A stretch of 64,000 bases of DNA from Phallusia mammillata (lineage: Eukaryota), in NCBI GenBank assembly GCA_965637545.1, contig OZ281500.1, positions 12,586,001 to 12,650,000 of the forward strand, in the 5' to 3' direction. This document shows positions 2,966-57,932 of this stretch, piece by piece. The first letter of the stretch is position 1. The number at the start of each line of letters is the position of its first letter. A model generated the notes under the pieces. It made no database searches. It was not told where the DNA came from and worked only from the letters and a program-made list of their open reading frames with translations. A program made the position numbers and the translations under genes.

Positions 2966-3075
2966 TTTTCTTCACCTAGCGGCAGTTTCTTTCCAACGAG
3001 CAAAGTAGAAAGCTTCTCTCGATCGGCGACAGTTGAAACTTTACTTTCAACGAGCAGTAGTTGAAAACTTCTTTA

Positions 3076-4462
3076 TGTAGACTCTGAACGGCCGACCTGC
3101 AAGGCTGAGCCTCACAAAGGGGTTTTTTCACGTTGAAACACGCCCCGCCCTTTCCCACACAAATCACACTTCCCGAATCTCGTGTAATAATCCACAGCGA
3201 CAACAGCGGCAACAACCACAACGTCGTACACAATCAGGAACGGACAGAAACAAGAATGAGAACGGAAACGGGAACGGAGACGGGAACGGTTTTCTAAACA
3301 AGAAAACGAAACACATTGACATATGTCAACGCACAAAAATGCCAATGTCTAACTTACAAACTATTTTGCGACACAGGTCAACAGGTACAGTTCACGTATC
3401 AACAGTTGCAAGACGATGAAACAATCGCTGCAATGACTATAGGAAAATACAGCATGCCATAAGTTACACATAAACGCCATGAATTAATTTAGGTCACAAG
3501 TCAAATTAAACACTCACCGACAATCACGGTAAACAGGCTTCACTTGAAGATTAATTAGTCAGTCGTCACAATATTTAATATAGCCTTAGTCGTCTCTAAA
3601 AATGTAACACAAACGAATTTACTTAATGCAGTTATAAATCACCTTGCTCGACCACGTTGTACAGTAAATGAATCAATCATTGCAACCAGGGTTGCCAGGT
3701 ACTGTCGGCTGGATTCGGACAGTATTTGTCTGAAAATCGGACATTTTAGGACAAAAAAAACGAGAGCGTAAAATTGCTAACAAGGTATCAATATCGAGGT
3801 GCCATCTGCCATTTTTTGTGCGTTTACGTTCCCCAAAGTGACGGACGTAAAATATGACGTCACTTATGCGTGCAACCACTAGAACTGAAATCCAAACTTG
3901 AAGCCCAACAAACGTCCTATGTTTGAAATAATATTTAGTTGGCAATTGCAACACGTTGCTGTAGTGTTTATCATTGGTTTCGCACCGTTTAAAAAATGTT
4001 TCGTCAACTTGTTGCTTCATATCACCTTAGATAACCATTTGTTACAATACAATTGCTTTGTACACAACAATGGTCATTCACTAGCAGACAATTATGTATT
4101 TAATGTCATAAACAAGGTACTAACCAAAACAAGTTGTACTTTTAAACCACGTTTTGTCGTAAAAAAGGGTTTGCAACCTTCAAAAAATAGGAAGGAGACA
4201 AAAAGTTATTCAATCAGCAAAATTCGGACATATTAGGACAAAAAACTAAACGTCCTAATGATTTTTACGCGTCGGACACAGCATGTGGAATTAGGCCAAT
4301 TTATCGTTTTTTGTCCGATTTTTAGGCCACCTGGCAACCCTGATTGCAACATACAGACAATAGCCTTCCAATTTTACTGTTACGCACATGGCGATTGTAA
4401 CGTCATAGCAGGGGAATAATGAGACAAGTTAATCATGCGTATCTGAACGTGGACATGTAACA
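3076..4462 (-). repeat. 5' LTR of BEL family 1 (about 720 bp without the MITE)
   Basis: TGTTACA start at 4462. The inner end is inferred at ...TCTACA (3076) because the following leader resembles that of family 2. The partner LTR is outside the window, so the inner boundary is unconfirmed. Confidence 0.6.
3687..4342. mobile_element. hAT-type MITE inserted in BEL1 LTR
   Basis: Perfect 14-bp TIR CAGGGTTGCCAGGT; 8-bp TSD ATTGCAAC (3679-3686, 4343-4350). Confidence 0.93.
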
Positions 4463-4467
4463 CTGCT

Positions 4468-13019: not shown

Positions 13020-13709
13020 TGTAACGTCAGGAATTTGCGCGCCTGGTACCGCGCTGGCGTCACACTAGAGAAGTCCAATTTCTGGAAACGCGTGAATTTA
13101 TTTTACACTTCGACGCGGTTCAATAGGACACGGTAATCACGTCACGTTCACCGTAGACACGACACGACACGATAGACACGTTCAAGATAATCACGGTTTT
13201 CTGCAAAGAGAACATTCACTCAAAAATGCGAAACAGAAATTAAATTTATACCGGCAGAAATAAAGCTTACCAGAGTTTTGGACCAGGGTATCAAAGATAA
13301 ACACAGTTTGATATCACCAGAAAGTGTTCTACACAGATAAAAAACGTAGACTTTTAATATACGGTTAATTGCGATAAGACAACTTTAATGCAAATCAAGC
13401 TTACCTTGCAAAGGCAACATTAATCCTTTTCGTCAGAGTTTTTAAGTTTATAAAGCATTACCATCTATTAATGACAAACAAATTATAATTAGTCACTTTC
13501 ATTACTTTATCTAACGTTTGCAAATTAAAGTCAGCAACTAACAAACTACACGTGGTCCAAACTAAACTCGATACTAAATGGCCAAAAGCACAGCATAGAG
13601 AAATAAACTACAATGATATTGTTACGTCATAGGGGATTCTGGCATTGTGGTGCAATCACACCATATAAGATGTGACGTAGGTTACGGTTGAGTGATTTAC
13701 GATGTTACA
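13020..13709 (-). repeat. 5' LTR of BEL2 (690 bp)
   Basis: Near-identical to 4468-5142; contains AATAAA on the sense strand; followed by the gag leader. Confidence 0.97.
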
Positions 13710-57055: not shown

Positions 57056-57932
57056 TGTTACATCGCCTTGTACATATGTTTATGTTTTCTGTGTTTCCCG
57101 CCAGTAGCCTTGATTCGTGTGTATGACGCAGTGTTGTGCAACCTGATACATTGTCTGGCACACTATCGGTGATTGTGATGTCACAACTTTGACATTGTTT
57201 ATTGGTAACACGTCTTGTAAGCAAGACCGCCTCGTGTTTATTAGTGACTGGAACTTACAGCGTCTGCATGCGTTTTTTAACTGGTCATTTATGTTTGTTT
57301 TTTGTGTAACAAACAGGAAAATTATGCTGTTTAGAAACTGAATCGTCCAATGTGTGACTTGTATATTTAGTGATCGGTAAGCATATGTTTAAACCTTGTT
57401 GTGACCTTTTGGATTTGAATTTATATGAAACCTGTATTCAGACGTGAATTCCGCCGTCGTCCAACCCCGTGTTATTCTGAACCGAACTGTGTTATTCCGG
57501 TAAGATTATTGTTGCTTAAGTTTGCCGTCAGTCACTAGTGTGATTAAGTGATGTTTATATGTGATGTTATTAGATGCTGTGTTTACAGACCTTCTACTGA
57601 TCGCTTGCATTTAAACGACTCCAGTCCTTTAATAGTTTGGTAAGCGTAAATGTCATTGAAATTCTCCTTCTGTTGCCTTGTCTTAATTTGAACATTTTTT
57701 GTAGAAACCGCCTTTTGACCCCTTGTACTCGCCGTGCTGCCATACTCTCGAGCGCCATCTTTCGGCTATATTGTAAAATAAAAGAGTTCGTTATATAGCT
57801 GCTGGCGTCTTGGAGTTTGAGCGCAAGGAAAGGCGCGTTAAAGACAATTTTAGGAACACAAGCGATCGCCCCTGTTGTGCTGTCTGGAGGCGCATGGAGT
57901 CACGCCTTCCGATAATTAAAGACAGCGCAACA
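57056..57932 (+). repeat. 5' LTR of BEL3
   Basis: TGTTACA...CAACA; AATAAA near 57777. Confidence 0.97.

Follow-up and report, generated by a model that had tools for sequence, protein, structure and literature searches.

The 64,000-nt stretch of the Phallusia mammillata genome examined here (part of contig OZ281500.1; referred to as the window) carries BEL1, a BEL/Pao retrotransposon with long terminal repeats (LTRs), and two of three GT..AG segments in its 5' LTR, on the minus strand, are genuine U2-type spliceosomal introns that are spliced by the host at the predicted GT..AG borders. A first-pass annotation, made from the sequence alone, had described all three segments as intron-like, and their positions on the minus strand, together with separating exons of 78 and 79 nt, were confirmed in the sequence (Table 1). 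Segments 2 and 3 (introns 2 and 3 in the following) are considered real introns because their joints occur in RNA-like contigs, both are precisely missing from retro-copies of the element, their splice sites are conserved, and the depletion of ATG in this region is restricted to exons. Segment 1 is not supported as an intron by any test that was run, although contigs could miss rare splicing. We estimate a probability of roughly 70% for the reading in which this part of the LTR corresponds to R-U5, the two introns lie in the 5' leader of the full-length RNA and segment 1 is no intron, the spliced RNA acts as messenger, and reverse transcription usually starts from unspliced RNA. As retroelements replicate by way of RNA, they are expected to lose introns, and to our knowledge the documented exceptions are few, namely Penelope-like elements and, recently, LTRs of maize.

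Splice joints, intron-less copies and conserved splice sites

The LTR was scanned for a GTRAGT donor followed 40–110 nt downstream by a pyrimidine-rich YAG acceptor. On the sense strand this returned exactly segments 2 and 3, and on the antisense strand of the LTR no unit. Dinucleotide shuffles of the LTR gave a mean of 0.086 units, with two or more at P = 0.004. The splice sites of segments 2 and 3 are thus distinguished from shuffled LTR sequence, whereas segment 1 fails the scan, with the donor GTGATT and pyrimidines at 8 of the 12 upstream bases.

Transcript evidence came from Logan contigs of four runs (X1, X5, X14 and X15), which were placed on L031, a young and typical copy of the element with its LTR at L031 51–771. 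Three of the runs (X1, X5 and X14) stem from three studies and are labeled 'RNA?', a label that is a guess, while X15 is a 716-Mb, DNA-like run. The intron 2 joint (L031 332|413, GT..AG, 80 nt skipped) was found in two contigs of X1 and also in X5, with borders matching segment 2, and its depth in X1 is 105, compared to 50.7 in the unspliced contig that ends at the donor. The intron 3 joint occurs in X5, where L031 491 passes directly to the letters following the AG at 556 (AAAACCGTTCCCGT...), with borders matching segment 3, and X14 has a loose end at L031 491 with the same letters. Joints in the RNA-like runs are exclusively canonical, at depths comparable to the unspliced path, and all three of these runs contain a contig connecting the internal region with the start of the 3' LTR. 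The joints expected from the first-pass annotation were therefore recovered for segments 2 and 3, in contigs whose RNA label is guessed, but for segment 1 there was no joint in any of the four runs, and contigs traverse it unspliced. Contig ends were also considered as evidence for a transcription start or poly(A) site, and this was rejected, as contigs break at variant bubbles, at the splice branch and where the LTR ends, and not at RNA ends.

In X15, the intron 2 joint is present at about 0.1% of the summed depth, alongside several non-canonical skips, and one X15 joint has the letters of an intron-less genomic copy on C3 (described below). Such genomic intron-less copies account for the rare X15 joints. 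The joints in the RNA-like runs read AAAACCG, and past the intron 3 junction the letters of the intron-less copies in the genome are AAAATCG; since the RNA-like joints have C where all genomic intron-less copies have T, they are not derived from those DNA copies. An RNA origin of the X1, X5 and X14 joints is likely.

Genome-wide (240 Mb), intron-less LTRs were located by the spacing of four 20-mers taken from exon ends and starts, and 36 LTR copies were put into an alignment. The markers at the end of exon 2 and the start of exon 3 are separated by 94–102 nt in 63 of 66 LTRs and abut directly in the other three, and the three LTRs without intron 2 also lack intron 3. In the alignment, what is missing from them is precisely LTR nt 283–362 and 442–505, while segment 1 is kept in all three. 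Two of the three belong to an element on C6 (L034, G000:C6:18376001-18386000) that is 7107 bp long, has two identical 578-nt LTRs, both intron-less, and is flanked by the 5-bp duplication TTTAG. The other is the 5' LTR of an older, truncated element on C3 (L035, G000:C3:5800001-5805000), from which the same two stretches are gone. These three LTRs are integrated products of doubly spliced RNA. The search for intron-less copies that the first-pass annotation had proposed thus turned up LTRs lacking exactly segments 2 and 3. Its expectation that reverse transcription of spliced RNA should purge introns from an LTR holds in that such loss does happen (three of 66 LTRs lack both introns), but it is rare, with 63 LTRs keeping intron 2, and something may select the unspliced form.

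Both intron-less lineages carry a private T at LTR nt 510, 5 nt past the intron 3 junction, which is found in no intron-bearing copy, yet an LTR tree places them in different clades. It is possible that the two are a single intron-less lineage that was reshaped by recombination, that the shared T is a convergence, or that the parent is unsampled. A decayed LTR relative (L047, G000:C1:8325801-8327500) has lost 59 nt that almost coincide with intron 3. It was rejected as a splice product lacking intron 3, since the deletion is imprecise, is flanked by two TTG repeats and spares 5 nt of intron sequence, indicating a deletion at the DNA level. Segment 1 was likewise rejected as an intron, having no joint in the four runs, being retained by the three processed LTRs and having an unconserved donor.

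More diverged relatives (LTRs of 73–85% identity) were taken from marker matches with mismatches and then aligned. The GTRAGT donor is retained in 12 of 14 relatives for intron 2 and in 13 of 14 for intron 3, with A/G switches at donor position +3. Most acceptors are still YAG, intron lengths are 75–82 and 63–71 nt, and breakage of splice sites is confined to decayed copies. The introns are conserved like the flanking exons (72–92% compared to 82–94% identity), while the segment 1 donor has disappeared wherever the LTR is diverged in its upstream part. Homology between subfamilies starts at LTR nt 193, or at nt 255–273, just upstream of intron 2. These breakpoints are consistent with a variable U3 giving way to R-U5, which would put the start of transcription shortly before intron 2, probably inside 3518–3595, and segment 1 probably lies in U3 or upstream of the transcription start. 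Diverged BEL1-like LTRs are also found in a tandem array on C8 (G000:C8:17409000-17425400, partly covered by L046) that consists of at least eight LTR-derived units, with spacings alternating between about 1.39 and 2.3 kb, and each unit retains the two introns.

Table 1. Positions within the window of the BEL1 LTR segments, its leader, the inserted element and the leader introns of BEL2 and BEL3
Feature	Position	Strand	Remarks
BEL1 5' LTR, nt 1-120	4343..4462	-	Starts TGTTACA at 4462; parted from the rest by the insertion
656-bp non-autonomous terminal inverted repeat element	3687..4342	.	Inserted in the U3 part of the BEL1 LTR
BEL1 5' LTR, nt 113-721	3076..3686	-	Ends ...GTCTACA at 3076; from own-genome search and LTR pair comparison
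Segment 1	3642..3596 (47 nt)	-	AAG|GTGATT..TTTTTAG; intron status unsupported
Block upstream of intron 2 (78 nt)	3518..3595	-	No ATG; A/T-rich TATA-like / ATTAAA motif at ~3572-3582
Segment 2 = intron 2	3517..3437 (81 nt; 80 nt in most copies)	-	TCG|GTGAGT..CCTATAG; 4 ATGs
Exon between introns 2 and 3 (79 nt)	3358..3436	-	No ATG
Segment 3 = intron 3	3357..3294 (64 nt)	-	TTT|GTAAGT..TGTTTAG; 2 ATGs
Palindrome TTGACATATGTCAA, perfect, 14 nt	3316..3329	-	Within intron 3; kept in diverged subfamilies
Last leader exon	2966..3293	-	Remainder of LTR (to 3076) and primer-binding/leader region until gag start; no ATG
gag-pol start codon	2963..2965	-	First ATG in the spliced leader
BEL2 candidate leader intron 1	13329-13404 (76 nt)	-	AAG|GTAAGC..TGTGTAG
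BEL2 candidate leader intron 2	13201-13270 (70 nt)	-	CTG|GTAAGC..TTTGCAG
BEL3 mini-introns	57377-57441, 57500-57587, 57640-57704		GTAAG..AG; 325 nt of exon ATG-free

Distribution of ATG between exons and introns

In a 5' untranslated region (UTR) that is scanned after splicing, the usual signature is a shortage of ATG that affects the exons and spares the introns, and this pattern is pronounced in BEL1. Not a single ATG occurs in the 482 nt of exonic leader between L031 255 and the start of gag, compared to 7.1 ± 2.0 in dinucleotide shuffles, none of which reached zero (0/3000). Introns 2 and 3, which add up to 144 nt, have six ATGs between them, and upstream frames of 7–47 codons begin at these. 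The same pattern is present in every young copy and in the window copy. In the diverged relatives, the introns have 4.2 and 2.2 ATGs per 100 nt, and the density is 0.6 both in the intervening exon and in the LTR downstream. As this is the signature of a leader scanned after splicing, the spliced RNA would be the translated form. The alternative that the segments border coding exons of a small LTR protein or a captured host gene was rejected, as the exons are free of ATG and the sole upstream ATG frame stops immediately.

Two other BEL/Pao elements in the window were compared. In BEL3, which belongs to a different family with a different LTR sequence, the LTR has three GTAAG..AG mini-introns (within 57377–57704), and all seven ATGs of 57351–57893 fall within them. 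The neighboring BEL2, also a distinct BEL family (5' LTR at 13020–13709, minus strand), has two candidate leader introns (Table 1), and the sole ATG of its 514-nt pre-gag zone lies inside the second of these. The exon after this second candidate intron opens with AAAACCG, like that of BEL1, and AAAACCG or AAACCG after the last intron is common to BEL1, BEL2 and BEL3. No intron-less BEL2 copy was found among the 16 LTRs with both markers, a weakly informative result given that the downstream marker matched few copies. Judged by these features, the leader architecture of BEL1 appears to recur in BEL3 and probably also in BEL2.

Possible roles of the two RNA forms and competing explanations

In the mechanism that we favor, the spliced RNA, with its AUG-free leader, would be the messenger for Gag-Pol, and the unspliced RNA would be poorly translatable on account of its six upstream AUGs, which open upstream open reading frames (ORFs) of 7–47 codons. 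The unspliced RNA would normally be the form that is packaged and reverse transcribed, and the introns would be inherited for that reason. Occasional reverse transcription of spliced RNA would give rise to the rare intron-less copies, which would scarcely spread. The spliced form is prominent in the RNA-like contigs yet intron-less LTRs are few, which fits a bias towards unspliced template. Such a bias could have its source in a packaging or dimerization signal inside an intron, for example the intron 3 palindrome, or in an expression that requires splicing, as has been suggested for Penelope (PMC2377424). The palindrome is, speculatively, a candidate site for RNA dimerization or packaging, or for protein binding. 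A broader and more tentative proposal, to which we give somewhat less than even odds, is that LTR leader introns form a two-fate switch, in which splicing would yield the Gag-Pol messenger and the unspliced, AUG-blocked RNA, with a signal for packaging or dimerization in an intron (the palindrome being a candidate), would become the genome; it would extend to at least three BEL families, with the intron-less copies providing a measure of its leak.

Several points weigh against the favored reading. The RNA labels of the runs are guesses, and Logan contigs carry no information on strand, level, start or end. The position of the introns in the 5' leader (R-U5), and not in the 3' UTR only, is deduced from the ATG depletion and the breaks in subfamily homology, and which RNA form is packaged or translated is something we infer. 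If the two intron-less lineages are one, intron-less elements can still transpose, which would weaken any claim that the introns are essential. The 63:3 ratio would also be expected without active selection if little of the template RNA is spliced.

This last possibility leads to an account in which splicing reflects noise or restriction on the part of the host, as with human L1, and has no role for the element, the introns persisting since most template RNA is unspliced. The rare processed copies (three of 66 LTRs) do resemble the SpIREs of L1, which have been described as dead ends of a splicing that inhibits retrotransposition (PMC5860796). ATG depletion is nevertheless restricted to exons, with six ATGs tolerated in the introns, as would be the case if the leader were translated in its spliced form; subfamilies that are only 73–85% identical still have the splice signals; and the same architecture occurs in BEL3 and probably BEL2. 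A neutral reading explains the ATG pattern and the conservation of the sites poorly, and we regard it as unlikely. Somewhat less likely again is that the introns are kept for a role at the DNA level, such as a downstream promoter or enhancer of the LTR (the palindrome, for example), that intron-less copies are transcriptionally weak, and that splicing is incidental. It would account for introns that equal the flanking exons in their conservation among diverged relatives and for the conserved, perfect 14-nt palindrome in intron 3, and it has a parallel in L1 SpIREs, in which splicing removes transcription-factor sites and promoter activity is lost as a result (PMC5860796). It leaves the confinement of ATGs to introns and the maintained consensus donors and acceptors unexplained, and a Penelope element from which a comparable intron had been deleted kept its RNA levels but lost reporter protein (PMC2377424).

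A further explanation would be an artefact, with the joints coming from the DNA of intron-less copies or from errors of contig assembly, and with those copies arising by DNA deletion rather than splicing. The runs are guessed to be RNA, and the DNA-like X15 also has the intron 2 joint along with several non-canonical skips. Yet all three intron-less LTRs have both deletions, which are separate from each other and end precisely at GT and AG; the full-length C6 element has identical LTRs and a target duplication; and the RNA joints have C where every genomic intron-less copy has T. The RNA-like runs show only canonical joints, with depths near that of the unspliced path, compared to about 0.1% for the intron 2 joint in X15, and the imprecise, microhomology-type deletion in the decayed L047 looks different. 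We consider an artefact highly improbable.

Comparison with known systems and features of the BEL1 element

The closest parallel is with Penelope of Drosophila virilis, which has a 75-bp intron located 46 bp downstream of the transcription start (PMC2377424). Like BEL1, it has a short spliceosomal intron in its terminal repeat, produces spliced and unspliced RNAs, keeps the intron in genomic copies and retains the splice sites in diverged relatives (PMC2377424), and its authors suggest that copies without the intron fare worse, since the element needs splicing for its expression (PMC2377424). The Penelope intron lies just downstream of the start site, and the corresponding position in BEL1 is deduced. 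Penelope-like elements are, however, a separate class of retroelement with a GIY-YIG endonuclease and a different replication route, whereas BEL1 is an LTR retrotransposon (with strand transfers and an integrase) that has two introns and documented, integrated intron-less copies. In human L1, splicing within the 5' UTR followed by retrotransposition yields SpIREs, rare copies without the spliced-out part (PMC5860796), and the intron-less copies on C6 and C3 are their counterpart among LTR elements. The C6 element has the corresponding features, as the spliced-out leader is absent and the hallmarks of normal integration are present. L1 has no LTRs, and its splice sites are deemed deleterious and splicing inhibitory (PMC5860796); in BEL1, by contrast, the ATG pattern and the conservation argue that splicing belongs to normal expression.

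Retroviruses resemble the logic proposed for BEL1 in that a single primary transcript serves as the genome when unspliced and supplies messengers when spliced, the signal for packaging being intronic. Their spliced RNAs lose gag-pol, and the acceptor is far downstream, outside the LTR, whereas in BEL1 both sites of both introns are inside the LTR and the spliced RNA retains the whole gag-pol frame; for BEL1, the packaging step is a proposal. In maize, a 2026 preprint described canonical introns within the LTRs of retrotransposons, with younger elements being spliced more (PMC13192763), and its authors claim the first evidence of introns in LTRs themselves (PMC13192763). That case concerns plant Ty1/Ty3 elements with introns of 1303 bp on average, mostly in non-coding RNAs contained within the LTR (PMC13192763). 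BEL1 differs in being an animal BEL/Pao element with two mini-introns of 64–81 nt in the leader of a coding RNA, and the BEL3 element of the same window adds an LTR with three mini-introns. In our literature search, no account of introns in the LTRs of ascidian or BEL/Pao elements came up. What is new here is the presence of two mini-introns wholly within an animal BEL/Pao LTR, together with processed progeny and the partition of ATGs.

A single genome thus combines LTR mini-introns that have splice evidence, integrated intron-less progeny and a signature of intron-only ATGs. This makes it testable how an LTR element without subgenomic RNAs splits one transcript between translation and packaging, with the share of intron-less copies as an internal measure of leakage. 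There is also a warning for annotation, in that LTRs may hold real splice sites that exonize into host transcripts.

The gag-pol frame of BEL1 is on the minus strand, begins at 2965 and exits the left edge of the window. The homologous copy L031 has one long ORF, with Pfam domains in the order gag–RT (reverse transcriptase)–A17–IN (DUF1759, RVT_1, Peptidase_A17, Integrase_H2C2). The match to the Pao-type aspartic peptidase (Peptidase_A17, PF05380) is strong (E = 5.7e-40), DUF1759 (PF03564, 4.4e-08) and the integrase zinc-binding domain (PF17921, 5e-09) are both above the Pfam cut-offs, and the RT domain (PF00078, 5.1e-06) scores 26.8 bits, slightly under its cut-off of 29.6. A comparison of 5' and 3' LTRs from several elements defined the family LTR as a direct repeat of about 721 nt, TGTTACA...GTCTACA, with TG..CA ends. 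There are about 65 LTR copies genome-wide, and family members are flanked by 5-bp target duplications (CTCAC and TTTAG). Because the 5'/3' LTR pairs of several elements are 99.5–100% identical, the family is young. The copy in the window is old, with an identity of 94.6% between its two LTRs and with disrupted reading frames.

The first-pass annotation correctly assigned the segments to the LTR of BEL1, but its description of the LTR needs correcting, since the approximately 721-nt LTR is split by a 656-bp element (Table 1). This insertion, which is found only in the window copy, has 14-bp terminal inverted repeats (CAGGGTTGCCAGGT) and an 8-bp target duplication (GTTGCAAT), and is hAT-like by the length of that duplication. 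In X1, a contig departs from the LTR at the insertion point (L031 170) into a terminal sequence that is nearly identical, but not identical, to that of the inserted element.

Directly after intron 3 there is a repeat of a CGTTCC-type hexamer (3240–3293, minus strand). Its length differs among copies by 6–48 nt, and it differs even between the LTRs of one element, by 12 nt in the element of the window. Finally, the BEL2 LTR end (4468) and the BEL1 LTR start (4462) are separated by a gap of 5 bp (4463–4467), which reads AGCAG on the minus strand.
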